A stretch of DNA of 64,000 nt from Mantamonas sphyraenae STR306 (Eukaryota > Protista > CRuMs): NCBI GenBank assembly GCA_026936335.1, contig JAPMXV010000054.1, positions 62,001 to 126,000 on the forward strand, in the 5' to 3' direction. A program made the position numbers and the translations under genes. The first letter of the stretch is position 1. Every line of letters starts with the position of its first letter. Under the pieces are notes generated by a model. That model searched no databases and was not told where the DNA came from. It saw only the letters and a program-made list of their open reading frames with translations. Of the stretch, positions 9,766-53,300 are shown piece by piece.

Positions 9766-11350
9766 ATGAACTTTCTGAGCGCGAGTCGAGCTCAATCACC
9801 AAGCTGTGATGACGTCGTTTTGCGAGTCCGCAAACGAGTCTGGATCGAGTATACCCATGGGGAACTTGAAGGAACAGTGAACAGCGTCATCGCCGCCTTC
9901 GAGGAGTGCGGAGTCGAAAAAGGATCCAGAATCCTGTGTGTACTGGAGGACACCGGTCATTTCTATCTCTTGGCATCCTACCTTGCCTGCGAACGGTACG
10001 GTATGGTTCTCGTACCGTGTCTCGCGCCTCGAGGTCGGCGTGTGCACAAGCAGAAGCCACGATTTGCATCGATTCTGTCGTCATGCCATATGCGATGCAC
10101 CCTTACTACCAAATCGGTGCAGAACATGTACAGAGAGGTTTTCGAAAGTCCCGTGCTGCTTGATGAACTTGAGCCAACAGCGAAAGTGTTTCAACCAAAA
10201 ACACCTCTCCCAAGCACGTTGGTTCTGCTCCAGTACAGCAGCGGAACTACGAGCAACGCCAAGCCGGTGCAAGTAGCCTTTGAGGATCTACATCACAACC
10301 TTCAGGTTCTCCAGTCGACGCTCCATGTGACCACGAACGGAGTGCAGTTTCGGTCTTGGCTTCCGTGGTGGCATGATCTGGGACTGATTTCGATGTTGCT
10401 GCTACCCTACTGGTGCTCCTGTGTCTCCCATCACGTTTCACCATTTGATTTTGTCACCGATCCATCAATGTGGCTCCTGGATTGTGGCAGATTGCCAGTC
10501 GTGAGCGCAACTCCAGATTTTGGGTTGCAGCTCGCTTTGCATCGCAAAGTAGACCTCGATTCAGTTCGTTGGCATGCCCTTATCCTGTGTGGGGAGGTCA
10601 ACCGTATGACCACTTGGGAAGCGACAAAGGCAGCATACCCCAGGTTGCACGAGACCCTTTGTCCCATGTATGGATCAGCAGAGACGACGTTGTGCGTGAC
10701 CTGCTCTTGGCGCCATTCATCCATGGTTGAAAGGGATGGGAGCGTCAGCAACGGAGGAGTCAAGCAGGATGCAAACATCCTCATCGTCGATTCTACAACG
10801 AGGAGTCAGACTGTGAGCATGGGAACTATAGGACTTGTCTTTGTTTCTCAGCCGTCGATCTCAACAGGATACTACAGAGGAGTTGCTGCAACTGGCCAAT
10901 TTCGAAAGTACATTCGTGGATTCGGACCATTCTACGAAACTGGTGACGAAGGACGAGTCACAAATGACGGCTTGTACTTGCGAGGTCGAATCAATGGATG
11001 TGTTTGTGTCGCAGGAGAGAACGTGTGGATGGAGGACATTGAGCATGCAATGACCCGTCTGTGCGAGGAGGCGAAGTGGTGCAGAAAGGGGAATGTGGCC
11101 GCCTGTCCAATGACAGACACCACACCACCATCGGTTGCTGTGTTTCAGGAGGTGATCAACACATCCAGTATCGACAAAAGGGAATGCGAACTCATAGCAG
11201 CATCTCTTCAACAAGCATTCCCACAGATTGAACTGATTATGACATTCTGCGATTCTGGAACCATGTAAGTGTGCAAGTGAAGAGACGTTGATGAACATTG
11301 CTCACACCAAAGCAGCGCAAAAACGACAAGTGGGAAACCAAACAGATCAA
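9766..11350 (+). other. NRPS loading domain: fatty acyl-AMP ligase (FAAL)-like adenylating domain
   Basis: LLQYSSGTTSNAKPV (FAAL FLQYTSGSTGxPKGV), SWLPWWHDLGLI (SWLPLYHDMGLI), PMYGSAETTL, YETGDEG, LYLRGR, and after splicing GTIAKTTSGKPNR (A10 motif IPKTTSGK). Confidence 0.8.
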
Positions 11351-29300: not shown

Positions 29301-32300
29301 GAGTATGCAAGTGGTGCAGAGACTGCAACGCGAGGGGCTGCGTGTGACAAGCAGTCAGGTGTATGAGCTGCAGACGGTGCGTGCGCTGGCTAATGCCCTT
29401 CAAGACGATGCGAACACACAGCAGGGTTCACACGAGGATGTTGCAGTGGCAGCTGTGACGCAGTATGACGTGCACGAATGTGACGGAGAGGCACTGAGCA
29501 GACTGTACGAAGAAGCACGGCGCGGGGTGGTTGGCGCAACGAAGGAGATTGTGATGTGTGGATTGGGCACGGGGTATGTGGACCTTGGGAAGCGTCTGCT
29601 GTGTTGTGGAGACGCCTGGGTGATGTGTGCATGTGGAAACGGGCGTGTGACGATGTCCTACCGCGCAGAAGCTGTGGAATCTCCGCTGGAAGTGATGCGG
29701 GGTGTGCTTGTGGGACTGGGACGAGAGGCTGTGATGCCGATGTCGTCGATGCAGCAAGGGATGGTGTTTCACTCGCTGCACAGCAGTGGTTCTGGGAAGC
29801 GGGTCGAGGAAGAACCTGCTGGTACCCCGAGTGCTACGGGGTCTACAGCCATGTTGGGCAACGTGGTGGATGGCCGAGCAGAGTACGTCGAACACGGATT
29901 GCTGGAGATGGACAACCTGGACCGTGTGCATGCGTACGCAGAGGCATGGGCAGGCGCTTGTTCATCGCATGCCATGCTGCATGCAAGTGTGGAGTGGCCG
30001 TTCATGCGGATCGAGCGTCAGAGCACACTGAGAGTGGACTACGTGCGCGCTGACGGCTCCGATGTGATGAGGACGGTTGAAGCACACAAGAGCATCCCGA
30101 TGCGACTCGACTTGGCACCGCTGGTGCGATTGCTGCTGGTGTTGCACAGGGACACGGGGAAGACAACGGTCCTGGTTACATTCCACCACGCTGTGCTTGA
30201 CGGGTGGTCAAACGCTCTGCTGTTGCGGGAGATCAGTCTGCGATACATGGAGCAGTACGAAGGAAGCGTGGGTCGGGCCACAGCTATCGCAGGACACACC
30301 GACCAGTTAGAGTATGCATGGTGGCTGTGGAACTCGAGCAAGGGGGATGCGCGACGACACTTTGCAGAACGGTTGAAGGGCGGCCCGGGTGGCAGTTTGG
30401 TGATGAACGAAGTGCAGCGCGAGCCGGCGGAGGAAGCACCGACGAAAGCCGTGGAGCGGATCACTGTGAAAGCACAGCTGCCTGCGGACGGGAACGAGGC
30501 ACTGGCAGTGACAGTGAACACGCGAGTGCTTGCGGCATGGGCACTTGTGCTAAGCGAGCTGTGTGGACAACAACGAGTGACGGTTGGCATGACACTGAGT
30601 GGCCGACCCGGAAGCGTGGAGTCGACATCAAGGCTGGTTGGATTGTATGTGTGCACACTGCCACTGTGTGTGGACGTGGAACTGGGACTGGGGCTAGATG
30701 GTTACCTGGAGCGGGTGATGCGAGAACAGCAGCGCTTGCAAGAGTTCCAACACTGTGGGTTGCCGGAAGTTGCAGGGTGGTGTGGATACGGGCAGGCTGG
30801 AGAAATGTTCGACAGCGTTTCTGTGTTTGAGAACTACCCTGGGATGGATGGAGAAGGTGGGGTTGGAGAGACACTCACGGAAGAGAGTGTGCGACAACCG
30901 TTCCGTGTTCACAGTGCGACGAGTGAGGAAGTGACGAACTATCCCGTGCTGCTGGCATCGACTGTGGACAAGAGACGTGGCGTGGTGGAAGTGCACATGG
31001 AGTTTTCGAATGCAGGGGGAGGCATGGCACGTGCCGTGCGCGAACGGTTGGCGGAGCAACTGGAGGGGTACCTGCGTGTGCTGTGCAGGGTGAAGAAGGG
31101 GAAACCACAGACACAAGTGGGCCGCGTGGTGGGAAAGGGATGGACACGATCAGTTGGGATGGACGGAGTGACACGTGCACGTTCAGCGTTGTCAGGGCTG
31201 GGCGGGAGGACAGGAGAGGTGACTTTGCACGTGTGCAGCGTGAGCAAGGGTGAAGTACATCTGAGCCGTGGGATGGTGTACGCGATGGGGAGGCAGGTGG
31301 CAGCGGAGCTGACAAGCATGACAGTTGGGGCAGGACCTGGTACGGTGGTGGGAGTGTGTCTGGAAGCACAGAGTGTGTACACAGTGGCATGCTGTCTGGG
31401 AGTGTGGATGTGTGGAGCAGCAGTGCTGTGTATGGAACCGCGGAACCCGGACTCGAAGCTGGAGGCACTTGCGTTGGAGGCGCAGCCGTGTGCTGTGATC
31501 ACGACGCCGGAGCTGGCGGATGCACGGAACTTGGGCAGGTTGTGCGGCAACAGGATTGTGTGTGTGGCAACCGAAGGAGTCCAGGTAGCACGCAGGGGAG
31601 TTGGTGGCAGCTGGGATGGTGAACGACCATGTGTGCGTGTGTGTGGTGGTTTGGTGGCGTATGTGATTGCGACGAGCGGAACGACGGCCGGCAGAAGCAA
31701 GCTTGTGCCTGTGACACACCGGGCGTGGATGAATACGTGCATGGACAGTCAAGTCGGTGTGGCTGGTGTAATGGTCAGCGATGTTGACAGCGGAGCAAGG
31801 GTGTACCAGTTTGCATCTTTGCAGTTTGATGCCAGCATGTACGAGATTGGCTGTGCTCTTGCACGAGGAAGTAACCATGGGCATTTGGTGCACCAGCGCG
31901 ATGGGAAAGGACTTTTGGGTGGAATGTCGCTGCTGGACGAAAGGTGCACGTTGGCATTGATACCTCCTGTGGTGTTGACCCTGGGATGTAGGGCGCGCTT
32001 GCTTGATGAAGAAGTGGTCGTGGACACACTGGTGACGGGTGGCGAAGCATGCAGTGCAGCAGTCGTGAACGAGTGGACCCGTGTGTGTGTGGGAGAATGA
32101 TCCATGCGTACGGGCCGTCGGAGGACGCAATTGTGTCAAGCGCACTGATGGTGGAAAGCTCTGGTGTGAAAGAGGCACCAGGGATTGGCAGTGCACTTGA
32201 CGGGAAGACAGCGTTGGTTCTGGACGGACTGATGCGCCCTCGACCGACGACAGGGGTAGGCCTGCTGCACATGACGGGAGTGGGGATCGCTCACGGATAC

Positions 32301-35300
32301 ATGGGGCGGCCACGACTGACGGCAGAACGGTTCCTGCCGTTTGATGACGGCCTGGTGCTGTACAACACAGGAGATCTTGTGCGTGTACACTCTGCCGGGA
32401 CGATGGAGTTTGTGGGGAGAAAGGACTTTCAGTTGAAGGTGCGCGGACACCGAGTGGAAGCACAGGCGGTGGAGGGTGTGCTGGAAACCCACGAGCGTGT
32501 GGCACAAGCAGTGGTCCGGAAGCATGGCACGGGTCTAGTTGGATACGTTGCGTGTGTTGGGGGCGTGGACGCAAGCATGGAGATGTTGCAAGCAAGCCTG
32601 TACGAGCAACTGCGAACCGCATTGCCGCCGTATGCGGTTCCGACCAGCGTGGTTGCACTGGACGCGATGCCAAACAACGCTGAACGGTAAGATCGACCTG
32701 CGTCGTCTTCCGAACCCAGGGGACACGGGTGTGCAGCTGGTGCGAAGCGAGTATGCGGCGGCCGAGAGCGAGATGGAAGTAACGGTGGCGAAAGCATTTG
32801 GTGCTGTACTTGGGGTGGATGAGGTTGGGCTGGACGACAGCTTCTTCACGCTAGGCGGTGACAGTATTCTGAGTATGCAAGTGGTGCAGAGACTGCAACG
32901 CGAGGGGCTGCGTGTGACAAGCAGTCAGGTGTATGAGCTGCAGACGGTGCGTGCGCTGGCTAATGCCCTTCAAGACGATGCGAACACACAGCAGGGTTCA
33001 CACGAGGATGTTGCAGTGGCAGCTGTGACGCAGTATGACGTGCACGAATGTGACGGAGAGGCACTGAGCAGACTGTACGAAGAAGCACGGCGCGGGGTGG
33101 TTGGCGCAACGAAGGAGATTGTGATGTGTGGATTGGGCACGGGGTATGTGGACCTTGGGAAGCGTCTGCTGTGTTGTGGAGACGCCTGGGTGATGTGTGC
33201 ATGTGGAAGACGGGCGTGTGACGATGTCCTACCGCGCAGAAGCTGTGGAATCTCCGCTGGAAGTGATGCGGGGTGTGCTTGTGGGACTGGGACGAGAGGC
33301 TGTGATGCCGATGTCGTCGATGCAGCAAGGGATGGTGTTTCACTCGCTGCACAGCATTGGTTCTGGGAAGCGGGTCGAGGAAGAACCTGCTGGTACCCGA
33401 GTGCTACGGGTCTACAGCCATGTTGGGCAACGTGGTGGATGGCCGAGCAGAGTACGTCGAACACGGATTGCTGGAGATGGACAACCTGGACCGTGTGCAT
33501 GCGTACGCAGAGGCATGGGCAGGCGCTTGTTCATCGCATGCCATGCTGCATGCAAGTGTGGAGTGGCCGTTCATGCGGATCGAGCGTCAGAGCACACTGA
33601 GAGTGGACTACGTGCGCGCTGACGGCTCCGATGTGATGAGGACGGTTGAAGCACACAAGAGCATCCCGATGCGACTCGACTTGGCACCGCTGGTGCGATT
33701 GCTGCTGGTGTTGCACAGGGACACGGGGAAGACAACGGTCCTGGTTACATTCCACCACGCTGTGCTTGACGGGTGGTCAAACGCTCTGCTGTTGCGGGAG
33801 ATCAGTCTGCGATACATGGAGCAGTACGAAGGAAGCGTGGGTCGGGCCACAGCTATCGCAGGACACACCGACCAGTTAGAGTATGCATGGTGGCTGTGGA
33901 ACTCGAGCAAGGGGGATGCGCGACGACACTTTGCAGAACGGTTGAAGGGCGGCCCGGGTGGCAGTTTGGTGATGAACGAAGTGCAGCGCGAGCCGGCGGA
34001 GGAAGCACCGACGAAAGCCGTGGAGCGGATCACTGTGAAAGCACAGCTGCCTGCGGACGGGAACGAGGCACTGGCAGTGACAGTGAACACGCGAGTGCTT
34101 GCGGCATGGGCACTTGTGCTAAGCGAGCTGTGTGGACAACAACGAGTGACGGTTGGCATGACACTGAGTGGCCGACCCGGAAGCGTGGAGTCGACATCAA
34201 GGCTGGTTGGATTGTATGTGTGCACACTGCCACTGTGTGTGGACGTGGAACTGGGACTGGGGCTAGATGGTTACCTGGAGCGGGTGATGCGAGAACAGCA
34301 GCGCTTGCAAGAGTTCCAACACTGTGGGTTGCCGGAAGTTGCAGGGTGGTGTGGATACGGGCAGGCTGGAGAAATGTTCGACAGCGTTTCTGTGTTTGAG
34401 AACTACCCTGGGATGGATGGAGAAGGTGGGGTTGGAGAGACACTCACGGAAGAGAGTGTGCGACAACCGTTCCGTGTTCACAGTGCGACGAGTGAGGAAG
34501 TGACGAACTATCCCGTGCTGCTGGCATCGACTGTGGACAAGAGACGTGGCGTGGTGGAAGTGCACATGGAGTTTTCGAATGCAGGGGGAGGCATGGCACG
34601 TGCCGTGCGCGAACGGTTGGCGGAGCAACTGGAGGGGTACCTGCGTGTGCTGTGCAGGGTGAAGAAGGGGAAACCACAGACACAAGTGGGCCGCGTGGTG
34701 GGAAAGGGATGGACACGATCAGTTGGGATGGACGGAGTGACACGTGCACGTTCAGCGTTGTCAGGGCTGGGCGGGAGGACAGGAGAGGTGACTTTGCACG
34801 TGTGCAGCGTGAGCAAGGGTGAAGTACATCTGAGCCGTGGGATGGTGTACGCGATGGGGAGGCAGGTGGCAGCGGAGCTGACAAGCATGACAGTTGGGGC
34901 AGGACCTGGTACGGTGGTGGGAGTGTGTCTGGAAGCACAGAGTGTGTACACAGTGGCATGCTGTCTGGGAGTGTGGATGTGTGGAGCAGCAGTGCTGTGT
35001 ATGGAACCGCGGAACCCGGACTCGAAGCTGGAGGCACTTGCGTTGGAGGCGCAGCCGTGTGCTGTGATCACGACGCCGGAGCTGGCGGATGCACGGAACT
35101 TGGGCAGGTTGTGCGGCAACAGGATTGTGTGTGTGGCAACCGAAGGAGTCCAGGTAGCACGCGGGGGAGTTGGTGGCAGCTGGGATGGTGAACGACCATG
35201 TGTGCGTGTGTGTGGTGGTTTGGTGGCGTATGTGATTGCGACGAGCGGAACGACGGCCGGCAGAAGCAAGCTTGTGCCTGTGACACACCGGGCGTGGATG

Positions 35301-38300
35301 AATACGTGCATGGACAGTCAAGTCGGTGTGGCTGGTGTAATGGTCAGCGATGTTGACAGCGGAGTAAGGGTGTACCAGTTTGCATCTTTGCAGTTTGATG
35401 CCAGCATGTACGAGATTGGCTGTGCTCTTGCACGAGGAAGTAACCATGGGCATTTGGTGCACCAGCGCGATGGGGAAGGACTTTTGGGTGGAATGTCGCT
35501 GCTGGACGAAAGGTGCACGTTGGCATTGATACCTCCTGTGGTGTTGACCCTGGGATGTAGGGCGCGCTTGCTTGATGAAGAAGTGGTCGTGGACACACTG
35601 GTGACGGGTGGCGAAGCATGCAGTGCAGCAGTCGTGAACGAGTGGACCCGTGTGTGTTGGAGAATGATCCATGCGTACGGGCCGTCGGAGGACGCAATTG
35701 TGTCAAGCGCACTGATGGTGGAAAGCTCTGGTGTGAAAGAGGCACCAGGGATTGGCAGTGCACTTGACGGGAAGACAGCGTTGGTTCTGGACGGGCTGAT
35801 GCGCCCTCGACCGACGACAGGGGTAGGCCTGCTGCACATGACGGGAGTGGGGATCGCTCACGGATACATGGGGCGGCCACGACTGACGGCAGAACGGTTC
35901 CTGCCGTTTGATGACGGCCTGGTGCTGTACAACACAGGAGATCTTGTGCGTGTACACTCTGCCGGGACGATGGAGTTTGTGGGGAGAAAGGACTTTCAGC
36001 TGAAGGTGCGCGGACACCGAGTGAAGCACAGGCGGTGGAGGGTGTGCTGGAAACCCACGAGCGTGTGGCACAAGCAGTGGTCCGGAAGCATGGCACGGGT
36101 CTAGTTGGATACGTTGCGTGTGTTGGGGCGTGGACGCAAGCATGGAGATGTTGCAAGCAAGCCTGTACGAGCAACTGCGAACCGCACTGCCGCCGTATGC
36201 GGTTCCGACCAGCGTGGTTGCACTGGACGCGATGCCAACAACGCTGAACGGTAAGATCGACCTGCGTCGTCTTCCGAACCCAGGGGACACGGGTGTGCAG
36301 CTGGTGCGAAGCGAGTATGCGGCGGCCGAGAGCGAGATGGAAGTAACGGTGGCGAAAGCATTTGGTGCTGTACTTGGGGTGGATGAGGTTGGGCTGGACG
36401 ACAGCTTCTTCACGCTAGGCGGTGACAGCATTCTGAGTATGCAAGTGGTGCAGAGACTGCAACGCGAGGGGCTGCGTGTGACAAGCAGTCAGGTGTATGA
36501 GCTGCAGACGGTGCGTGCGCTGGCTAATGCCCTTCAAGACGATGCGAACACACAGCAGGGTTCACACGAGGATGTTGCAGTGGCAGCTGTGACGCAGTAT
36601 GACGTGCACGAATGTGACGGAGAGGCACTGAGCAGACTGTACGAAGAAGCACGGCGCGGGGTGGTTGGCGCAACGAAGGAGATTGTGATGTGTGGATTGG
36701 GCACGGGGTATGTGGACCTTGGGAAGCGTCTGCTGTGTTGTGGAGACGCCTGGGTGATGTGTGCATGTGGAGACGGGCGTGTGACGATGTCCTACCGCGC
36801 AGAAGCTGTGGAATCTCCGCTGGAAGTGATGCGGGGTGTGCTTGTGGGACTGGGACGAGAGGCTGTGATGCCGATGTCGTCGATGCAGCAAGGGATGGTG
36901 TTTCACTCGCTGCACAGCAGTGGCTCTGGGAAGCGGGTCGAGGAAGGACCTGCTGGTACCCCGAGTGCTACGTGGTCTACAGCCATGTTGGGCAACGTGG
37001 TGGATGGCCGAGCAGAGTACGTCGAACACGGATTGCTGGAGATGGACAACCTGGACCGTGCACATGCGTACGCAGAGGCATGGGCAGGCGCTTGTTCATC
37101 GCATGCCATGCTGCATGCAAGTGTGGAGTGGCCGTTCATGCGGATCGAGCGTCAGAGCACACTGAGAGTGGACTACGTGCGTGCTGACGGCTCCGATGTG
37201 ATGAGGACGGTTGAAGCACACAAGAGCATCCCGATGCGACTCGACTTGGCACCGCTGGTGCGATTGCTGCTGGTGTTGCACAGGGACACGGGGAAGACAA
37301 CGGTCCTGGTTACATTCCACCACGCTGTGCTTGACGGGTGGTCAAACGCTCTGCTGTTGCGGGAGATCAGTCTGCGATACATGGAGCAGTACGAAGGAAG
37401 CGTGGGTCGGGCCACAGCTATCGCAGGACACACCGACCAGTTAGAGTATGCATGGTGGCTGTGGAACTCGAGCAAGGGGGATGCGCGACGACACTTTGCA
37501 GAACGGTTGAAGGGCGGCTCGGGTGGCAGTTTGGTGATGAACGAAGTGCAGCGCGAGCCGGCGGAGGAAGCACCGACGAAAGCCGTGGAGCGGATCACTG
37601 TGAAAGCACAGCTGCCTGCGGACGGGAACGAGGCACTGGCAGTGACAGTGAACACGCGAGTGCTTGCGGCATGGGCACTTGTGCTAAGCGAGCTGTGTGG
37701 ACAACAACGAGTGACGGTTGGCATGACACTGAGTGGCCGACCCGGAAGCGTGGAGTCGACATCAAGGCTGATTGGATTGTATGTGTGCACACTGCCACTG
37801 TGTGTGGACGTGGAACTGGGACTGGGGCTAGATGGTTACCTGGAGCGGGTGATGCGAGAACAGCAGCGCTTGCAAGAGTTCCAACACTGTGGGTTGCCGG
37901 AAGTTGCAGGGTGGTGTGGATACGGGCAGGCTGGAGAAATGTTCGACAGCGTTTCTGTGTTTGAGAACTACCCTGGGATGGATGGAGAAGGTGGGGTTGG
38001 AGAGACACTCACGGAAGAGAGTGTGCGACAACCGTTCCGTGTTCACAGTGCGACGAGTGAGGAAGTGACGAACTATCCCGTGCTGCTGGCATCGACTGTG
38101 GACAAGAGACGTGGCGTGGTGGAAGTGCACATGGAGTTTTCGAATGCAGGGGGAGGCATGGCACGTGCCGTGCGCGAACGGTTGGCGGAGCAACTGGAGG
38201 GGTACCTGCGTGTGCTGTGCAGGGTGAAGAAGGGGAAACCACAGACACAAGTGGGCCGCGTGGTGGGAAAGGGATGGACACGATCAGTTGGGATGGACGG

Positions 38301-41300
38301 AGTGACACGTGCACGTTCAGCGTTGTCAGGGCTGGGCGGGAGGACAGGAGAGGTGACTTTGCACGTGTGCAGCGTGAGCAAGGGTGAAGTACATCTGAGC
38401 CGTGGGATGGTGTACGCGATGGGGAGGCAGGTGGCAGCGGAGCTGACAAGCATGACAGTTGGGGCAGGACCTGGTACGGTGGTGGGAGTGTGTCTGGAAG
38501 CACAGAGTGTGTACACAGTGGCATGCTGTCTGGGAGTGTGGATGTGTGGAGCAGCAGTGCTGTGTATGGAACCGCGTAACCCGGACTCGAAGCTGGAGGC
38601 ACTTGCGTTGGAGGCGCAGCCGTGTGCTGTGATCACGACGCCGGAGCTGGCGGATGCACGGAACTTGGGCAGGTTGTGCGGCAACAGGATTGTGTGTGTG
38701 TGGCAACCGAAGGAGTCCAGGTAGCACGCGGGGGAGTTGGTGGCAGCTGGGATGGTGAACGACCATGTGTGCGTGTGTGTGGTGGTTTGGTGGCGTATGT
38801 GATTGCGACGAGCGGAACGACGGCCGGCAGAAGCAAGCTTGTGCCTGTGACACACCGGGCGTGGATGAATACGTGCATGGACAGTCAAGTCGGTGTGGCT
38901 GGTGTAATGGTCAGCGATGTTGACAGCGGAGCAAGGGTGTACCAGTTTGCATCTTTGCAGTTTGATGCCAGCATGTACGAGATTGGCTGTGCTCTTGCAC
39001 GAGGAAGTAACCATGGGCATTTGGTGCACCAGCGCGATGGGGAAGGACTTTTGGGTGGAATGTCGCTGCTGGACGAAAGGTGCACGTTGGCATTGATACC
39101 TCCTGTGGTGTTGACCCTGGGATGTAGGGCGCGCTTGCTTTGATGAAGAAGTGGTCGTGGACACACTGGTGACGGGTGGCGAAGCATGCAGTGCAGCAGT
39201 CGTGAACGAGTGGACCCGTGTGTGTGGGAGAATGATCCATGCGTACGGGCCGTCGGAGGACGCAATTGTGTCAAGCGCACTGATGGTGGAAAGCTCTGGT
39301 GTGAAAGAGGCACCAGGGATTGGCAGTGCACTTGACGGGAAGACAGCGTTGGTTCTGGACGGACTGATGCGCCCTCGACCGACGACAGGGGTAGGCCTGC
39401 TGCACATGACGGGAGTGGGGATCGCTCACGGATACATGGGGCGGCCACGACTGACGGCAGAACGGTTCCTGCCGTTTGATGACGGCCTGGTGCTGTACAA
39501 CACAGGAGATCTTGTGCGTGTACACGCTGCCGGGACGATGGAGTTTGTGGGAGAAAGGACTTTCAGCTGAAGGTGCGCGGACACCGAGTGGAAGCACAGG
39601 CGGTGGAGGGTGTGCTGGAAACCCACGAGCGTGTGGCACAAGCAGTGGTCCGGAAGCATGGCACGGGTCTAGTTGGATACGTTGCGTGTGTTGGGGGCGT
39701 GGACGCAAGCATGGAGATGTTGCAAGCAAGCCTGTACGAGCAACTGCGAAGCGCACTGCCGCCGTATGCGGTTCCGACCAGCGTGGTTGCACTGGACGCG
39801 ATGCCAACAACGCTGAACGGTAAGATCGACCTGCGTCGTCTTCCGAACCCAGGGGACACGGGTGTGCAGCTGGTGCGAAGCGAGTATGCGGCGGCCGAGA
39901 GCGAGATGGAAGTAACGGTGGCGAAAGCATTTGGTGCTGTACTTGGGGTGGATGAGGTTGGGCTGGACGACAGCTTCTTCACGCTAGGGTGGTGACAGCA
40001 TTCTGAGTATGCAAGTGGTGCAGAGACTGCAACGCGAGGGGCTGCGTGTGACAAGCAGTCAGGTGTATGAGCTGCAGACGGTGCGTGCGCTGGCTAATGC
40101 CCTTCAAGACGATGCGAACACACAGCAGGGTTCACACGAGGATGTTGCAGTGGCAGCTGTGACGCAGTATGACGTGCACGAATGTGACGGAGAGGCACTG
40201 AGCAGACTGTACGAAGAAGCACGGCGCGGGGTGGTTGGCGCAACGAAGGAGATTGTGATGTGTGGATTGGGCACGGGGTATGTGGACCTTGGGAAGCGTC
40301 TGCTGTGTTGTGGAGACGCTTGGGTGATGTGTGCATGTGGAAACGGGCGTGTGACGATGTCCTACCGCGCAGAAGCTGTGGAATCTCCGCTGGAAGTGAT
40401 GCGGGGTGTGCTTGTGGGACTGGGACGAGAGGCTGTGATGCCGATGTCGTCGATGCAGCAAGGGATGGTGTTTCACTCGCTGCACAGCAGTGGTTCTGGG
40501 AAGCGGGTCGAGGAAGAACCTGCTGGTACCCCGAGTGCTACGTGGTCTACAGCCATGTTGGGCAACGTGGTGGATGGCCGAGCAGAGTACGTCGAACATG
40601 GATTGCTGGAGATGGACAACCTGGACCGTGCACATGCGTACGCAGAGGCATGGGCGTGCGCTTGTTCATCGCATGCCATGCTGCATGCAAGTGTGGAGTG
40701 GCCGTTCATGCGGATCGAGCGTCAGAGCACACTGAGAGTGGACTACGTGCGTGCTGACGGCTCCGATGTGATGAGGACGGTTGAAGCACACAAGAGCATC
40801 CCGATGCGACTCGACTTGGCACCGCTGGTGCGATTGCTGCTGGTGTTGCACAGGGACACGGGGAAGACTACGGTACTGGTTACATTCCACCACGCTGTGC
40901 TTGACGGGTGGTCAAACGCTCTGCTGTTGCGGGAGATCAGTCTGCGATACATGGAGCAGTACGAAGGAAGCGTGGGTCGGGCCACAGCTATCGCAGGACA
41001 CACCGACCAGTTAGAGTATGCATGGTGGCTGTGGAACTCGAGCAAGGGGGATGCGCGACGACACTTTGCAGAACGGTTGAAGGGCGCCCGGGTGGCAGTT
41101 TGGTGATGAACGAAGTGCAGCGCGAGCCGGTGGAGGAAGCACCGACGAAAGCCGTGGAGCGGATCACTGTGAAAGCACAGCTGCCTGCGGACGGGAACGA
41201 GGCACTGGCAGTGACAGTGAACACGCGAGTGCTTGCGGCATGGGCACTTGTGCTAAGCGAGCTGTGTGGACAACAACGAGTGACGGTTGGCATGACACTG

Positions 41301-44300
41301 AGTGGCCGACCCGGAAGCGTGGAGTCGACATCAAGGCTGATTGGATTGTATGTGTGCACACTGCCACTGTGTGTGGACGTGGAACTGGGACTGGGGCTAG
41401 ATGGTTACCTGGAGCGGGTGATGCGAGAACAGCAGCGCTTGCAAGAGTTCCAACACTGTGGGTTGCCGGAAGTTGCAGGGTGGTGTGGATACGGGCAGGC
41501 TGGAGAAATGTTCGACAGCGTTTCTGTGTTTGAGAACTACCCTGGGATGGATGGAGAAGGTGGGGTTGGAGAGACACTCACGGAAGAGAGTGTGCGACAA
41601 CCGTTCCGTGTTCACAGTGCGACGAGTGAGGAAGTGACGAACTATCCCGTGCTGCTGGCATCGACTGTGGACAAGAGACGTGGCGTGGTGGAAGTGCACA
41701 TGGAGTTTTCGAATGCAGGGGGAGGCATGGCACGTGCCGTGCGCGAACGGTTGGCGGAGCAACTGGAGGGGTACCTGCGTGTGCTGTGCAGGGTGAAGAA
41801 GGGGATGCCACAGACACAAGTGGGCCGCGTGGTGGGAAAGGGATGGACACGATCAGTTGGGATGGACGGAGTGACACGTGCACGTTCAGCGTTGTCAGGG
41901 CTGGGCGGGAGGACAGGAGAGGTGACTTTGCACGTGTGCAGCGTGAGCAAGGGTGAAGTACATCTGAGCCGTGGGATGGTGTACGCGATGGGGAGGCAGG
42001 TGGCAACGGAGCTGACAAGCATGACAGTTGGGGCAGGACCTGGTACGGTGGTGGGAGTGTGTCTGGAAGCACAGAGTGTGTACACAGTGGCATGCTGTCT
42101 GGGAGTGTGGATGTGTGGAGCAGCAGTGTTTGTGCATGGAACCGCGGAACCCGGACTCGAAGCTGGAGGCACTTGCGTTGGAGGCGCAGCCGTGTGCTGT
42201 GATCACGACGCCGGAGCTGGCGGATGCACGGAACTTGGGCAGGTTGTGCGGCAACAGGATTGTGTGTGTGGCAACCGAAGGAGTCCAGGTAGCACGCGGG
42301 GGAGTTGGTGGCAGCTGGGATGGTGAACGACCATGTGTGCGTGTGTGTGGTGGTTTGGTGGCGTATGTGATTGCGACGAGCGGAACGACGGCCGGCAGAA
42401 GCAAGCTTGTGCCTGTGACACACCGGGCATGGATGAATACGTGCTTCGCTTACTCGAAGTACTTGTCCACGTCAACACGTGTCGGGCAAATGTTGTCTAT
42501 GCAGTTCGACGCGAGCATGCTTGAACTGGGATGGGGCTTGATTGGAGGCAGCCAAGTGGTACATTGTGATTTGAACGATGGCTTGTTGTACGTGTTGGAG
42601 AGCTCGTGCGTTCAGGTTGCGTCCGTACCACCGGTGCTGTTGGCGAGGCACGAGTACGCGGATCTCTCGGTTGAAGGACTGCAAATGGTATCTGCAGGAG
42701 GGGAAGCTACAACGAAAGAGATGCTGCGCAAATGGGCGGGCTCCTTGGTATACATACAAGCGTACGGTCCTTCGGAAGACTCGATTGTCTCAACGATGAC
42801 TGTGTTGGGTGAATATGACACACCAAGCATCGGTAGTGCACTTGACGGGAAGACAGCGTTGGTTCTGGACGGGCTGATGCGCCCTCGACCGGCGACAGGG
42901 GTAGGCCTGCTGCACATGACGGGAGTGGGGATCGCTCACGGATACATGGGGCGGCCACGACTGACGGCAGAACGGTTCCTGCCGTTTGATGACGGCCTGG
43001 TGCTGTACAACACAGGAGATCTTGTGCGTGTACACTCTGCCGGGACGATGGAGTTTGTGGGGAGAAAGGACTTTCAGCTGAAGGTGCGCGGACACCGAGT
43101 GGAAGCACAGGCGGTGGAGGGTGTGCTGGAAACCACGAGCGTGTGGCACAAGCAGTGGTCCGGAAGCATGGCACGGGTCTAGTTGGATACGTTGCGTGTG
43201 TTGGGGGCGTGGACGCAAGCATGGAGATGTTGCAAGCAAGCCTGTACGAGCAACTGCGAACCGCATTGCCGCCGTATGCGGTTCCGACCAGCGTGGTTGC
43301 ACTGGACGCGATGCCAACAACGCTGAACGGTAAGATCGACCTGCGTCGTCTTCCGAACCAGGGGACACGGGTGTGCAGCTGGTGCGAAGCGAGTATGCGG
43401 CGGCCGAGAGCGAGATGGAAGTACGGTGGCGAAAGCATTTGGTGCTGTACTTGGGGTGGATGAGGTTGGGCTGGACGACAGCTTCTTCACGCTAGGCGGT
43501 GACAGTATTCTGAGTATGCAAGTGGTGCAGAGACTGCAACGCGAGGGGCTGCGTGTGACAAGCAGTCAGGTGTATGAGCTGCAGACGGTGCGTGCGCTGG
43601 CTAATGCCCTTCAAGACGATGCGAACACACAGCAGGGTTCACACGAGGATGTTGCAGTGGCAGCTGTGACGCAGTATGACGTGCACGAATGTGACGGAGA
43701 GGCACTGAGCAGACTGTACGAAGAAGCACGGCGCGGGGTGGTTGGCGCAACGAAGGAGATTGTGATGTGTGGATTGGGCACGGGGTATGTGGACCTTGGG
43801 AAGCGTCTGCTGTGTTGTGGAGACGCCTGGGTGATGTGTGCATGTGGAGACGGGCGTGTGACGATGTCCTACCGCGCAGAAGCTGTGGAATCTCCGCTGG
43901 AAGTGATGCGGGGTGTGCTTGTGGGACTGGGACGAGAGGCTGTGATGCCGATGTCGTCGATGCAGCAAGGGATGGTGTTTCACTCGCTGCACAGCAGTGG
44001 CTCTGGGAAGCGGGTCCAGGAAGGACCTGCTGGTACCCCGAGTGCTACGTGGTCTACAGCCATGTTGGGCAGCGTGGTGGATGGCCGAGCAGAGTACGTC
44101 GAACACGGATTGCTGGAGATGGACAACCTGGACCGTGCACATGCGTACGCAGAGGCATGGGCAGGCGCTTGTTCATCGCATGCCATGCTGCATGCAAGTG
44201 TGGAGTGGCCGTTCATGCGGATCGAGCGTCAGAGCACACTGAGAGTGGACTACGTGCGTGCTGACGGCTCCGATGTGATGAGGTCGGTTGAAGCACACAA

Positions 44301-47300
44301 GAGCATCCCGATGCGACTCGACTTGGCACCGCTGGTGCGATTGCTGCTGGTGTTGCACAGGGACACGGGGAAGACAACGGTCCTGGTTACATTCCACCAC
44401 GCTGTGCTTGACGGGTGGTCAAACGCTCTGCTGTTGCGGGAGATCAGTCTGCGATACATGGAGCAGTACGAAGGAAGCGTGGGTCGGGCCACAGCTATCG
44501 CAGGACACACCGACCAGTTAGAGTATGCATGGTGGCTGTGGAACTCGAGCAAGGGGGTGCGCGACGACACTTGCAGAACGGTTGAAGGGCGGCTCGGGTG
44601 GCAGTTTGGTGATGAACGAAGTGCAGCGCGAGCCGGCGGAGGAAGCACCGACGAAAGCCGTGGAGCGGATCACTGTGAAAGCACAGCTGCCTGCGGACGG
44701 GAACGAGGCACTGGCAGTGACAGTGAACACGCGAGTGCTTGCGGCATGGGCACTTGTGCTAAGCGAGCTGTGTGGACAACAACGAGTGACGGTTGGCATG
44801 ACACTGAGTGGCCGACCCGGAAGCGTGGAGTCGACATCAAGGCTGATTGGATTGTATGTGTGCACACTGCCACTGTGTGTGGACGTGGAACTGGGACTGG
44901 GGCTAGATGGTTACCTGGAGCGGGTGATGCGAGAACAGCAGCGCTTGCAAGAGTTCCAACACTGTGGGTTGCCGGAAGTTGCAGGGTGGTGTGGATACGG
45001 GCAGGCTGGAGAAATGTTCGACAGCGTTTCTGTGTTTGAGAACTACCCTGGGATGGATGGAGAAGGTGGGGTTGGAGAGACACTCACGGAAGAGAGTGTG
45101 CGACAACCGTTCCGTGTTCACAGTGCGACGAGTGAGGAAGTGACGAACTATCCGTGCTGCTGGCATCGACTGTGGACAAGAGACGTGGCGTGGTGGAAGT
45201 GCACATGGAGTTTTCGAATGCAGGGGGAGGCATGGCACGTGCCGTGCGCGAACGGTTGGCGGAGCAACTGGAGGGGTACCTGCGTGTGCTGTGCAGGGTG
45301 AAGAAGGGGAAACCACAGACACAAGTGGGCCGCGTGGTGGGAAAGGGATGGACACGATCAGTTGGGATGGACGGAGTGACACGTGCACGTTCAGCGTTGT
45401 CAGGGCTGGGCGGGAGGACAGGAGAGGTGACTTTGCACGTGTGCAGCGTGAGCAAGGGTGAAGTACATCTGAGCCGTGGGATGGTGTACGCGATGGGGAG
45501 GCAGGTGGCAGCGGAGCTGACAAGCATGACAGTTGGGGCAGGACCTGGTACGGTGGTGGGAGTGTGTCTGGAAGCACAGAGTGTGTACACAGTGGCATGC
45601 TGTCTGGGAGTGTGGATGTGTGGAGCAGCAGTGCTGTGTATGGAACCGCGGAACCCGGACTCGAAGCTGGAGGCACTTGCGTTGGAGGCGCAGCCGTGTG
45701 CTGTGATCACGACGCCGGAGCTGGCGGATGCACGGAACTTGGGCAGGTTGTGCGGCAACAGGATTGTGTGTGTGGCAACCGAAGGAGTCCAGGTAGCACG
45801 CAGGGGAGTTGGTGGCAGCTGGGATGGTGAACGACCATGTGTGCGTGTGTGTGGTGGTTTGGTGGCGTATGTGATTGCGACGAGCGGAACGACGGCCGGC
45901 AGAAGCAAGCTTGTGCCTGTGACACACCGGGCGTGGATGAATACGTGCATGGACAGTCAAGTCGGTGTGTGGCTGGTGTAATGGTCAGCGATGTTGACAG
46001 CGGAGTAAGGTGTGTACCAGTTTGCATCTTTGCAGTTTGATGCCAGCATGTACGAGATTGGCTGTGCTCTTGCACGAGGAAGTAACCATGGGCATTTTGT
46101 GCACCAGCGCGATGGAGAAGGACTTTTGGGTGGAATGTCGCTGCTGGACGAAAGGTGCACGTTGGCATTGATACCTCCTGTGGTGTTGACCCTGGGATGT
46201 AGGGCGCGCTTGCTTGATGAAGAAGTGGTCGTGGACACACTGGTGACGGGTGGCGAAGCATGCAGTGCAGCAGTCGTGAACGAGTGGACCCGTGTGTGTG
46301 GGAGAATGATCCATGCGTACGGGCCGTCGGAGGACGCAATTGTGTCAAGCGCACTGATGGTGGAAAGCTCTGGTGTGAAAGAGGCACCAGGATTGGCAGT
46401 GCACTTGACGGGAAGACAGCGTTGGTTCTGGACGGACTGATGCGCCCTCGACCGACGACAGGGGTAGGCCTGCTGCACATGACGGGAGTGGGGATCGCTC
46501 ACGGATACATGGGGCGGCCACGACTGACGGCAGAACGGTTCCTGCCGTTTGATGACGGCCTGGTGCTGTACAACACAGGAGATCTTGTGCGTGTACACTC
46601 TGCCGGGACGATGGAGTTTGTGGGGAGAAAGGACTTTCAGCTGAAGGTGCGCGGACACCGAGTGGAAGCACAGGCGGTGGAGGGTGTGCTGGAAACCCAC
46701 GAGCGTGTGGCACAAGCAGTGGTCCGGAAGCATGGCACGGGTCTAGTTGGATACGTTGCGTGTGTTGGGGGCGTGGACGCAAGCATGGAGATGTTGCAAG
46801 CAAGCCTGTACGAGCAACTGCGAACCGCATTGCCGCCGTATGCGGTTCCGACCAGCGTGGTTGCACTGGACGCGATGCCAACAACGCTGAACGGTAAGAT
46901 CGACCTGCGTCGTCTTCCGAACCCAGGGGACACGGGTGTGCAGCTGGTGCGAAGCGAGTATGCGGCGGCCGAGAGCGAGATGGAAGTAACGGTGGCGAAA
47001 GCATTTGGTGCTGTACTTGGGGTGGATGAGGTTGGGCTGGACGACAGCTTCTTCACGCTAGGCGGTGACAGCATTCTGAGTATGCAAGTGGTGCAGAGAC
47101 TGCAACGCGAGGGGCTGCGTGTGACAAGCAGTCAGGTGTATGAGCTGCAGACGGTGCGTGCGCTGGCTAATGCCCTTCAAGACGATGCGAACACACAGCA
47201 GGGTTCACACGAGGATGTTGCAGTGGCAGCTGTGACGCAGTATGACGTGCACGAATGTGACGGAGAGGCACTGAGCAGACTGTACGAAGAAGCACGGCGC

Positions 47301-50300
47301 GGGGTGGTTGGCGCAACGAAGGAGATTGTGATGTGTGGATTGGGCACGGGGTATGTGGACCTTGGGAAGCGTCTGCTGTGTTGTGGAGACGCTGGGTGAT
47401 GTGTGCATGTGGAAACGGGCGTGTGACGATGTCCTACCGCGCAGAAGCTGTGGAATCTCCGCTGGAAGTGATGCGGGGTGTGCTTGTGGGACTGGGACGA
47501 GAGGCTGTGATGCCGATGTCGTCGATGCAGCAAGGGATGGTGTTTCACTCGCTGCACAGCAGTGGTTCTGGGAAGCGGGTCGAGGAAGAACCTGCTGGTA
47601 CCCCGAGTGCTACGTGGTCTACAGCCATGTTGGGCAACGTGGTGGATGGCCGAGCAGAGTACGTCGAACACGGATTGCTGGAGATGGACAACCTGGACCG
47701 TGCACATGCGTACGCAGAGGCATGGGCAGGCGCTTGTTCATCGCATGCCATGCTGCATGCAAGTGTGGAGTGGCCGTTCATGCGGATCGAGCGTCAGAGC
47801 ACACTGAGAGTGGACTACGTGCGCGCTGACGGCTCCGATGTGATGAGGACGGTTGAAGCACACAAGAGCATCCCGATGCGACTCGACTTGGCACCGCTGG
47901 TGCGATTGCTGCTGGTGTTGCACAGGGACACGGGGAAGACAACGGTCCTGGTTACATTCCACCACGCTGTGCTTGACGGGTGGTCAAACGCTCTGCTGTT
48001 GCGGGAGATCAGTCTGCGATACATGGAGCAGTACGAAGGAAGCGTGGGTCGGGCCACAGCTATCGCAGGACACACCGACCAGTTAGAGTATGCATGGTGG
48101 CTGTGGAACTCGAGCAAGGGGGATGCGCGACGACACTTTGCAGAACGGTTGAAGGGCGGCCCGGGTGGCAGTTTGGTGATGAACGAAGTGCAGCGCGAGC
48201 CGGCGGAGGAAGCACCGACGAAAGCCGTGGAGCGGATCACTGTGAAAGCACAGCTGCCTGCGGACGGGAACGAGGCACTGGCAGTGACAGTGAACACGCG
48301 AGTGCTTGCGGCATGGGCACTTGTGCTAAGCGAGCTGTGTGGACAACAACGAGTGACGGTTGGCATGACACTGAGTGGCCGACCCGGAAGCGTGGAGTCG
48401 ACATCAAGGCTGGTTGGATTGTATGTGTGCACACTGCCACTGTGTGTGGACGTGGAACTGGGACTGGGGCTAGATGGTTACCTGGAGCGGGTGATGCGAG
48501 AACAGCAGCGCTTGCAAGAGTTCCAACACTGTGGGTTGCCGGAAGTTGCAGGGTGGTGTGGATACGGGCAGGCTGGAGAAATGTTCGACAGCGTTTCTGT
48601 GTTTGAGAACTACCCTGGGATGGATGGAGAAGGTGGGGTTGGAGAGACACTCACGGAAGAGAGTGTGCGACAACCGTTCCGTGTTCACAGTGCGACGAGT
48701 GAGGAAGTGACGAACTATCCCGTGCTGCTGGCATCGACTGTGGACAAGAGACGTGGCGTGGTGGAAGTGCACATGGAGTTTTCGAATGCAGGGGGAGGCA
48801 TGGCACGTGCCGTGCGCGAACGGTTGGCGGAGCAACTGGAGGGGTACCTGCGTGTGCTGTGCAGGGTGAAGAAGGGGAAACCACAGACACAAGTGGGCCG
48901 CGTGGTGGGAAAGGGATGGACACGATCAGTTGGGATGGACGGAGTGACACGTGCACGTTCAGCGTTGTCAGGGCTGGGCGGGAGGACAGGAGAGGTGACT
49001 TTGCACGTGTGCAGCGTGAGCAAGGGTGAAGTACATCTGAGCCGTGGGATGGTGTACGCGATGGGGAGGCAGGTGGCAGCGGAGCTGACAAGCATGACAG
49101 TTGGGGCAGGACCTGGTACGGTGGTGGGAGTGTGTCTGGAAGCACAGAGTGTGTACACAGTGGCATGCTGTCTGGGAGTGTGGATGTGTGGAGCAGCAGT
49201 GCTGTGTATGGAACCGCGGAACCCGGACTCGAAGCTGGAGGCACTTGCGTTGGAGGCGCAGCCGTGTGCTGTGATCACGACGCCGGAGCTGGCGGATGCA
49301 CGGAACTTGGGCAGGTTGTGCGGCAACAGGATTGTGTGTGTGGCAACCGAAGGAGTCCAGGTAGCACGCGGGGGAGTTGGTGGCAGCTGGGATGGTGAAC
49401 GACCATGTGTGCGTGTGTGTGGTGGTTTGGTGGCGTATGTGATTGCGACGAGCGGAACGACGGCCGGCAGAAGCAAGCTTGTGCCTGTGACACACCGGGC
49501 GTGGATGAATACGTGCATGGACAGTCAAGTCGGTGTGGCTGGTGTAATGGTCAGCGATGTTGACAGCGGAGCAAGGGTGTACCAGTTTGCATCTTTGCAG
49601 TTTGATGCCAGCATGTACGAGATTGGCTGTGCTCTTGCACGAGGAAGTAACCATGGGCATTTGGTGCACCAGCGCGATGGGGAAGGACTTTTGGGTGGAA
49701 TGTCGCTGCTGGACGAAAGGTGCACGTTGGCATTGATACCTCCTGTGGTGTTGACCCTGGGATGTAGGGCGCGCTTGCTTGATGAAGAAGTGGTCGTGGA
49801 CACACTGGTGACGGGTGGCGAAGCATGCAGTGCAGCAGTCGTGAACGAGTGGACCCGTGTGTGTTGGAGAATGATCCATGCGTACGGGCCGTCGGAGGAC
49901 GCAATTGTGTCAAGCGCACTGATGGTGGAAAGCTCTGGTGTGAAAGAGGCACCAGGGATTGGCAGTGCACTTGACGGGAAGACAGCGTTGGTTCTGGACG
50001 GGCTGATGCGCCCTCGACCGACGACAGGGGTAGGCCTGCTGCACATGACGGGAGTGGGGATCGCTCACGGATACATGGGGCGGCCACGACTGACGGCAGA
50101 ACGGTTCCTGCCGTTTGATGACGGCCTGGTGCTGTACAACACAGGAGATCTTGTGCGTGTACACGCTTCCGGGACGATGGAGTTTGTGGGGAGAAAGGAC
50201 TTTCAGTTGAAGGTGCGCGGACACCGAGTGGAAGCACAGGCGGTGGAGGGTGTGCTGGAAACCCACGAGCGTGTGGCACAAGCAGTGGTCCGGAAGCATG

Positions 50301-53300
50301 GCACGGGTCTAGTTGGATACGTTGCGTGTGTTGGGGGCGTGGACGCAAGCATGGAGATGTTGCAAGCAAGCCTGTACGAACAACTGCGAAGCGCACTGCC
50401 GCCGTATGCGGTTCCGACCAGCGTGGTTGCACTGGACGCGATGCCAACAACGCTGAACGGTAAGATCGACCTGCGTCGTCTTCCGAACCCAGGGGACACG
50501 GGTGTGCAGCTGGTGCGAAGCGAGTATGCGGCGGCCGAGAGCGAGATGGAAGTAACGGTGGCGAAAGCATTTGGTGCTGTACTTGGGGTGGATGAGGTTG
50601 GGCTGGACGACAGCTTCTTCACGCTAGGCGGTGACAGCATTCTGAGTATGCAAGTGGTGCAGAGACTGCAACGCGAGGGGCTGCGTGTGACAAGCAGTCA
50701 GGTGTATGAGCTGCAGACGGTGCGTGCGCTGGCTAATGCCCTTCAAGACGATGCGAACACACAGCAGGGTTCACACGAGGATGTTGCAGTGGCAGCTGTG
50801 ACGCAGTATGACGTGCACGAATGTGACGGAGAGGCACTGAGCAGACTGTACGAAGAAGCACGGCGCGGGGTGGTTGGCGCAACGAAGGAGATTGTGATGT
50901 GTGGATTGGGCACGGGGTATGTGGACCTTGGGAAGCGCCTGCTGTGTTGTGGAGACGCTTGGGTGATGTGTGCATGTGGAGACGGGCGTGTGACGATGTC
51001 CTACCGCGCAGAAGCTGTGGAATCTCCGCTGGAAGTGATGCGGGGTGTGCTTGTGGGACTGGGACGAGAGGCTGTGATGCCGATGTCGTCGATGCAGCAA
51101 GGGATGGTGTTTCACTCGCTGCACAGCAGTGGTTCTGGGAAGCGGGTCGAGGAAGAACCTGCTGGTACCCCGAGTGCTACGTGGTCTACAGCCATGTTGG
51201 GCAACGTGGTGGATGGCCGAGCAGAGTACGTCGAACATGGATTGCTGGAGATGGACAACCTGGACCGTGCACATGCGTACGCAGAGGCATGGGCGTGCGC
51301 TTGTTCATCGCATGCCATGCTGCATGCAAGTGTGGAGTGGCCGTTCATGCGGATCGAGCGTCAGAGCACACTGAGAGTGGACTACGTGCGTGCTGACGGC
51401 TCCGATGTGATGAGGACGGTTGAAGCACACAAGAGCATCCCGATGCGACTCGACTTGGCACCGCTGGTGCGATTGCTGCTGGTGTTGCACAGGGACACGG
51501 GGAAGACTACGGGTACTGGTTACATTCCACCACGCTGTGCTTGACGGGTGGTCAAACGCGCTGCTGTTGCGGGAGATCAGTCTGCGATACATGGAGCAGT
51601 ACGAAGGAAGCGTGGGTCGGGCCACAGCTATCGCAGGACACACCGACCAGTTAGAGTATGCATGGTGGCTGTGGAACTCGAGCAAGGGGGATGCGCGACG
51701 ACACTTTGCAGAACGGTTGAAGGGCGGCTCGGGTGGCAGTTTGGTGATGAACGAAGTGCAGCGCGAGCCGGTGGAGGAAGCACCGACGAAAGCCGTGGAG
51801 CGGATCACTGTGAAAGCACAGCTGCCTGCGGACGGGAACGAGGCACTGGCAGTGACAGTGAACACGCGAGTGCTTGCGGCATGGGCACTTGTGCTAAGCG
51901 AGCTGTGTGGACAACAACGAGTGACGGTTGGCATGACACTGAGTGGCCGACCCGGAAGCGTGGAGTCGACATCAAGGCTGATTGGATTGTATGTGTGCAC
52001 ACTGCCACTGTGTGTGGACGTGGAACTGGGACTGGGGCTAGATGGTTACCTGGAGCGGGTGATGCGAGAACAGCAGCGCTTGCAAGAGTTCCAACACTGT
52101 GGGTTGCCGGAAGTTGCAGGGTGGTGTGGATACGGGCAGGCTGGAGAAATGTTCGACAGCGTTTCTGTGTTTGAGAACTACCCTGGGATGGATGGAGAAG
52201 GTGGGGTTGGAGAGACACTCACGGAAGAGAGTGTGCGACAACCGTTCCGTGTTCACAGTGCGACGAGTGAGGAAGTGACGAACTATCCCGTGCTGCTGGC
52301 ATCGACTGTGGACAAGAGACGTGGCGTGGTGGAAGTGCACATGGAGTTTTCGAATGCAGGGGGAGGCATGGCACGTGCCGTGCGCGAACGGTTGGCGGAG
52401 CAACTGGAGGGGTACCTGCGTGTGCTGTGCAGGGTGAAGAAGGGGATGCCACAGACACAAGTGGGCCGCGTGGTGGGAAAGGGATGGACACGATCAGTTG
52501 GGATGGACGGAGTGACACGTGCACGTTCAGCGTTGTCAGGGCTGGGCGGGAGGACAGGAGAGGTGACTTTGCACGTGTGCAGCGTGAGCAAGGGTGAAGT
52601 ACATCTGAGCCGTGGGATGGTGTACGCGATGGGGAGGCAGGTGGCAACGGAGCTGACAAGCATGACAGTTGGGGCAGGACCTGGTACGGTGGTGGGAGTG
52701 TGTCTGGAAGCACAGAGTGTGTACACAGTGGCATGCTGTCTGGGAGTGTGGATGTGTGGAGCAGCAGTGTTGTGCATGGAACCGCGTAACCCGGACTCGA
52801 AGCTGGAGGCACTTGCGTTGGAGGCGCAGCCGTGTGCTGTGATCACGACGCCGGAGCTGGCGGATGCACGGAACTTGGGCAGGTTGTGCGGCAACAGGAT
52901 TGTGTGTGTGGCAACCGAAGGAGTCCAGGTAGCACGCGGGGGAGTTGGTGGCAGCTGGGATGGTGTGAACGACCATGTGTGCGTGTGTGTGGTGGTTTGG
53001 TGGCGTATGTGATTGCGACGAGCGGAACGACGGCCGGCAGAAGCAAGCTTGTGCCTGTGACACACCGGGCATGGATGAATACGTGCTTCGCAGTCAAGTC
53101 GAAGTGGCTTGTCCACGTCAACACGTGTCGAGCAAATGTTTTGCTCTTTGCAGTTTGACGCCAGCATGTACGAGACTGGGATGTGGGGCTTGCATTGGAA
53201 GCAACCAAGTGGTATTTGGTGCATTTGAACGATGGCTTGGAAGGACTTTTGGAGAGCTCGTGCGTTCGAAAGGTTGCGTCCGTACCACCTGTGCTGTTGG

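Follow-up and report, generated by a model that had tools for sequence, protein, structure and literature searches.

A-core swaps such as that of hormaomycin are very widespread in bacteria, and donors were identified for five of 12 such events (Baunach et al. 2021, PMC8097286). Because Baunach et al. found donors in only these five, a donor is not required for the A-core exchange class. The flavodoxin-like subdomain of Kries (2015), as given in PMC10212144, extends from a point between motifs A3 and A4 precisely to the G-motif. Engineered swaps needed more than 55% identity to succeed, and those at 29-44% failed (Thong et al. 2021, PMC8616955). Concerted evolution, with a homogenisation that spares functionally diverged parts, has been described for the syringopeptin NRPS and the mycolactone PKS (Medema et al. 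2014, PMC4256081), and GRINS are a further case of long near-identical repeats (Nivina et al. 2021, PMC8256042).

Here we compare with these systems a locus of the diploid protist Mantamonas sphyraenae, a unicellular marine predator. The locus is contained in a window of 64,000 nucleotides (contig C54, 62001-126000; the whole stretch of DNA that was analysed; positions given without a contig refer to it). It holds a single nuclear NRPS gene, which has an intron and the domain order FAAL-T-(C-A-T)x13-TE, with the following parts:

9766..11264, + strand: FAAL-like loading domain, exon 1 (top specific NCBIfam matches are fatty acyl-AMP ligases; Pfam AMP-binding)
11265..11315, + strand: GT-AG intron of 51 nt (from the sequence)
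11485..57678, + strand: array of 13 units of 3.51-3.57 kb each
57679..58452, + strand: remainder of the final carrier domain, then a thioesterase of the alpha/beta-hydrolase type with its stop at 58452 (Abhydrolase match; GxSxG in the translation)

The FAAL gene model with its intron was read exon by exon and, when the downstream exon is translated alone, exon 2 starts with the A10 lysine motif in frame with the first carrier domain. Each unit consists of the C-terminal half of a carrier (T), a short remnant, a condensation (C) domain, an adenylation (A) domain and the N-terminal half of a carrier. Units M1 to M7 start at 11485, 15054, 18622, 22188, 25706, 29281 and 32851, and M8 to M13 at 36415, 39985, 43492, 47058, 50624 and 54169. 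The gene has the architecture of a lipopeptide NRPS: a domain for loading the acyl group, C-A-T modules whose active-site motifs are intact, and a terminal thioesterase (TE). The genes flanking it on both sides are eukaryotic (CDC5L-like, TOM1-domain, DEAD helicase and WD40), and bacterial contamination was ruled out by these neighbours together with the spliceosomal intron. We searched the whole assembly (25,061,354 bases in 78 contigs), which had been built with FALCON from PacBio RSII reads with an N50 of 11 kb and polished with Racon and Pilon (PMC10492846). This is the sole multi-module NRPS in it, the other condensation or carrier matches being one stand-alone domain (contig C4) and one carrier (contig C51).

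Inside the A domain, the units carry a segment, which we call the cassette, in two forms named A and B:

13945..14393, + strand: cassette A of M1, cut between common flanks
17515..17961, + strand: cassette A of M2, cut between common flanks
21081..21527, + strand: cassette A of M3, cut between common flanks
24652..25048, + strand: cassette B of M4, noisy, in an A-type chassis
28173..28620, + strand: cassette A of M5, cut between common flanks
31741..32189, + strand: cassette A of M6, cut between common flanks
35310..35756, + strand: cassette A of M7, cut between common flanks
38877..39324, + strand: cassette A of M8, cut between common flanks
42445..42834, + strand: cassette B of M9, flavodoxin-like subdomain, code DALSSGAIVK
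45949..46397, + strand: cassette A of M10, cut between common flanks
49517..49963, + strand: cassette A of M11, clean copy, code DAYLVGAIVK
53087..53508, + strand: cassette of M12, a fine A/B mosaic in a B-type chassis
56629..57018, + strand: cassette B of M13, clean copy adjoining the unique gene end

As assembled, the order of the cassettes is AAABAAAABAA?B, where the question mark is M12. Cut between the common flanks, cassette B has 390 bp in M9 and M13, which are one base apart, and cassette A has 447 bp in M2, M3, M7 and M11 and 448-449 bp in M1, M5, M6, M8 and M10. The majority type A unit has 3567 bp and M13 has 3510 bp, both with open frames, and the difference of 57 bp is exactly that between 447 and 390, so that the cassette accounts for the two unit lengths, as had been proposed from the sequence alone. 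The same sequence-only reading placed the shorter segment in M4, M9 and M13, which is right for M9 and M13, but M4 holds a noisy B of 397 bp. Similarly, its two module types describe nine A units and the B units M9 and M13, but not M12, which is neither; and the flanks that it called identical are so right beside the cassette, but the chassis as a whole is 98.8-99.8% identical between units at the DNA level. In the cassette, 50 of 127 aligned residues are equal between A and B (38-39%), whereas the rest of the module is 98-99% identical, a contrast far greater than chance would give (99.4% over the 322 residues upstream and 98.5% over the 200 downstream, A-type against B-type). These edges are sharp and the flanks are far more alike than the segment, as in A-core exchange. 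GC content and G-skew are somewhat lower in B than in A. Furthermore, B is part of the array, as claimed before: the M13 cassette lies ~0.7 kb from the unique TE and has no copy elsewhere in the genome, and on these grounds we rejected a mis-assembly of B from another locus.

The best solved-structure match of both cassettes is GrsA PheA (1AMU), on which the segment extends from ~211 to Gly349. Its start thus lies between motifs A3 and A4, and its end coincides with the G-motif, which is located between A5 and A6. This agrees with its previous identification as the flavodoxin-like recognition subdomain. It had also been stated that the segment holds nearly all Stachelhaus residues, and nine of the ten code positions do lie inside it; the remaining one, Lys517, is the A10 lysine and belongs to the common chassis. 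The B domain, modelled with AlphaFold (pLDDT 88), has strands and helices in alternation over residues 184-313, and the model matches adenylation domains of NRPSs. The engineered subdomain, as far as it is portrayed in PMC10212144 (for Kries 2015) and PMC8616955, has the same extent from A3/A4 to the G-motif with nine of ten code residues, and the Mantamonas cassettes have 130-149 residues compared with 139 in the EndA subdomain. In contrast to engineered pairs, the Mantamonas pair is natural, and its 38-39% identity falls within the range in which those swaps failed (29-44%).

The codes given earlier, DAYLVGAIVK for A and DALSSGAIVK for B, were reproduced by alignment to 1AMU and by multiple alignment. 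They differ at three positions of the pocket floor, which are Tyr in A and Leu in B at 239, Leu and Ser at 278, and Val and Ser at 299. The A code matches at eight of ten positions the code DAMLVGAICK of a variovoracin module, and the product of that module carries leucinol (PMC12964202). Because of this match, A probably activates Leu or a similar aliphatic residue, which supports the hydrophobic residue previously suggested for it. B probably activates a larger or polar residue, because three bulky pocket residues are replaced by Leu, Ser and Ser; Tyr or Trp would be a first guess. A literature search for the exact B code found no characterised match.

Among the relatives fetched, flanks at least 90% identical around a subdomain at most 60% identical were found in three of 246 multi-module proteins and in one of 57 genome loci, with about the same edges. 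These four parallels are from Paenibacillus sp. FSL R7-0652 (WP_342551889.1, P0067), Trinickia sp. LjRoot230 (L027) and metagenomes (P0061 and P0136). Like the Mantamonas gene, they combine flanks that are 91-100% identical with a subdomain that is 27-33% identical, but their lines are shorter and their cassettes more distant. Repeats may have collapsed in the two cases from metagenomes; those of Paenibacillus and Trinickia lie on long contigs and have non-identical flanks. Such a pattern is not exceptional among NRPSs. P0061, with 5775 residues, has five modules on one chassis and three cassette types, and HHxxxDG was not found in its condensation domains. Compared with the bacterial A-core swaps (hormaomycin; PMC8097286), the Mantamonas case differs in its host, a diploid protist, and in having no identifiable donor; moreover, the whole line and not one module is built on one chassis, and the cassettes are sisters.

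Close relatives of the gene were not found, identities being at most 39% to representatives (mostly multi-module proteins), 38% in homolog searches and 37% to metagenome contigs. With outside relatives at ~39% protein identity at most, the modules show the within-gene likeness of concerted evolution. As in the syringopeptin NRPS and the mycolactone PKS, modules have been duplicated and have probably recombined internally while functionally diverged parts escaped, but in Mantamonas it is a subdomain that escapes, and homogenisation extends to all 13 condensation domains, the fatty-acid acceptor included. This first condensation domain (11485-15053) is ~99% identical to the internal ones and is not of a distinct starter type. 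Among SNP pairs, 324 of 666 are incompatible with a single tree, to which read mixing in polishing could contribute, and adjacent units are more alike than distant ones, the distance rising with the spacing. Both observations are as expected from unequal crossing-over or conversion, and polishing could add to them. In addition, M4-M6 (22188-32850) and M9-M11 (39985-50623) have private SNPs in common pairwise as well as one deletion, which is either a higher-order duplication or an assembly echo. Early in the condensation domain, a loop (unit columns ~500-590, e.g. 54670-54760) contains a cluster of replacement SNPs, whereas the SNPs elsewhere are mostly silent.

The array also resembles GRINS in its long near-identical repeats and in a strong GC skew confined to them (Nivina et al. 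2021, PMC8256042). GRINS are defined by repeats of more than 500 bp that are more than 80% identical and by GC and TA skews whose mean absolute values each exceed 0.15. The array has such repeats, and its GC skew is 0.293, but its TA skew is 0.096 (below 0.15) with a correlation of 0.20, and GRINS membership was therefore rejected. G exceeds C with a skew of 0.29 over 11485-57750 (0.45 G and 0.18 C at third positions), only in the repeated modules, the FAAL and TE having a skew of ~0.04.

Two modules depart from the simple scheme. The M4 cassette, of 397 bp, has 21 gap events and seven mismatches with respect to that of M13, and it is a poorly polished B. The unit as a whole is nearest to M3 and M7 (nine differences), with 15, 22 and 27 differences to M9, M12 and M13, respectively. 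At nine upstream sites on which M9, M12 and M13 agree, its alleles are of type A, and B alleles follow at the cassette and for 58 bases further. Its B-like tract therefore begins somewhere within 24340-24636 and ends at 25106 at the earliest. These alleles suggest that M4 probably received B as a cassette-sized copy. It is the sole direct sign of such copying, yet it is found in the noisiest unit. By contrast, M9, M12 and M13 have six private SNPs in common, up to 1.9 kb upstream of the cassette, and therefore spread as a C-plus-A block. The proposal that the peptide is written by exchanging cassettes on a uniform chassis thus finds a counterpart in M4, which looks like a cassette-sized copy, but not in the other three modules. 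In the 422 bp of the M12 cassette, 175 bases are painted A and 154 B, with 18 switches and all three frames broken, and the M12 chassis has B alleles at all upstream diagnostic sites. A real third cassette was ruled out, as it would require 18 crossovers in 422 bases between sequences 60% alike and would leave all frames broken; the mosaic is most likely a consensus artefact of mixed reads.

Regarding the origin of the cassettes, the A/B four-fold sites are saturated (four of 21 equal), whereas the chassis is ~1% diverged. A tree built from the cassettes only, together with 69 bacterial ones, places A and B as sisters (bootstrap 100, SH-aLRT 95), both on long branches, so that their pairing could partly be long-branch attraction. 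A and B have in common motifs around A4 and A5 that are present in none of 1070 bacterial domains, and their score for rarity-weighted residues in common is 131, compared with at most 75 with any bacterial domain. The sisterhood, the rare motifs and the saturated sites therefore indicate an ancient divergence of the cassettes inside a single lineage. The sequence-only reading had called for a search for additional cassette donors, and this search gave none: in neither the genome nor the fetched relatives could a donor be identified, and silent donor cassettes elsewhere in the genome were rejected.

With moderate confidence, we favour the explanation that this is a fatty-acid-loading NRPS in which two ancient cassettes have been kept by selection while recombination homogenised the array. 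A fatty acid would be loaded and ~13 residues of two kinds would then be added. A and B would descend from two ancient modules of one NRPS lineage, and unequal crossing-over and gene conversion would have overwritten everything else with one sequence, the recognition subdomain being protected by selection for two substrates and by its lack of DNA similarity. B would move inside larger duplicated blocks (M9, M12 and M13) and also in a tract that barely exceeds the cassette (M4). The same model has been put forward for bacteria (PMC4256081, PMC8097286). The cassette order, as assembled, would spell the peptide: about nine Leu-like residues plus three or four others, followed by release by the thioesterase. 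Hence, from the predicted specificities, we infer that the product would be a hydrophobic lipopeptide, probably membrane- or surface-active.

An unlikely explanation is a one-step subdomain swap, in which a single A module gave rise to the array and B entered it one time from another NRPS (lost or foreign), by a double crossover at the edges of the subdomain, and was then copied. The cassette edges are indeed very sharp, the A-B similarity (62 bits) is about equal to that with the best bacterial cassettes (63-73 bits), in the bacterial parallels, whose edges are the same, the cassettes are only 27-33% identical, and the lower GC and G-skew of B would also fit. However, the genome contains no donor, and since A and B are sisters with rare motifs in common, the donor would be a paralogue of the same lineage, which is nearly the same event as in the explanation that we prefer.

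It is rather less probable that A and B are real and the order of the 13 modules is largely an assembly product, the true array differing in length or order. In that case B would spread in whole blocks only, and M4 and M12 would be read mixtures of copies or haplotypes. This could be expected from PacBio RSII reads with an N50 of 11 kb in a diploid genome, M12 is clearly a consensus of mixed reads, no unit is noisier than M4, and M4-M6 are like M9-M11 at private SNPs and one common deletion. Against this, unique sequence anchors the array on either side, the outermost cassette being A on the 5' side and B on the 3' side, M13 is error-free, and the substitutions are enriched for silent changes, unlike errors. 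Under the favoured explanation too, the SNP patchwork, M4 and the module order may partly be artefacts of 11-kb noisy reads over a 46-kb array. As assembled, 48 indels affect 12 of the 13 modules and none M13; 47 of the 48 are of one or two bases, and 40 lie in base or dinucleotide runs, where 38% would be expected at random. The chassis substitutions comprise 28 silent, 24 replacement and no nonsense changes (pN/pS 0.31, p 2e-5). The indels thus appear to be residual read errors and the gene to be under purifying selection. That it is a decaying pseudogene whose cassette difference has no present function, as frameshifts in 12 of 13 modules and deviant A1-A3 motifs might suggest, is very improbable given an indel profile typical of such reads, the substitution pattern without nonsense changes and the intact catalytic motifs of C, A, T and TE.

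Several genes elsewhere in the genome could serve this assembly line. All of its carriers have the GGDSI motif, which has been linked to DCL-type condensation domains (PMC10212144), and the line itself contains no epimerase. A stand-alone epimerisation domain is found on contig C4 (143137-145173, + strand; TIGR01720 above cut-off, typical E motifs), which is the only condensation-family domain outside the array and may act in trans on the NRPS. An MbtH-like gene (contig C43, 328859-329001, - strand), with a frameshift of one or two bases in a G-rich stretch as assembled, lies 1.7 kb from an AMP-binding gene (325939-327162), and its product is a likely partner of the NRPS. To our knowledge, MbtH-like proteins are regarded as bacterial. 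There are two matches to the phosphopantetheinyl transferase family (contig C44, 11074-11265, and contig C15, 175268-175639), so that the carriers could be primed. On contig C29 (156125-159124), one open frame of 2183 residues has two AMP-binding domains and no carrier match.

In our literature search, we found no report of an NRPS in Mantamonas, nor of this cassette arrangement in its branch of the eukaryotes. The mechanism is known from bacteria, and the novelty lies in the host and the scale. NRPS specialists will find the swap itself no surprise; what deserves attention is the host, the scale and the simplicity of a two-letter system. A bolder interpretation, doubtful in our opinion, is that the two chromosomes carry different cassettes, A and B, in the same M12 chassis, that copying is still active, and that the gene is a rewritable two-letter template for two allelic lipopeptides, assisted by the trans epimerase and the MbtH-like partner; if so, the chassis would tolerate cassettes only 38% alike. 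One chassis that holds cassettes 38-39% alike, under the identity at which engineered swaps have usually worked, may be a tolerant host for subdomain engineering. Furthermore, one condensation sequence would have to join the fatty acid and A- and B-type residues in all combinations, which bears on the gatekeeping by C domains. If the gene is active, the rule by which bacterial NRPSs diversify, to change the recognition subdomain and keep the interfaces, would also be at work in a deep-branching eukaryote.
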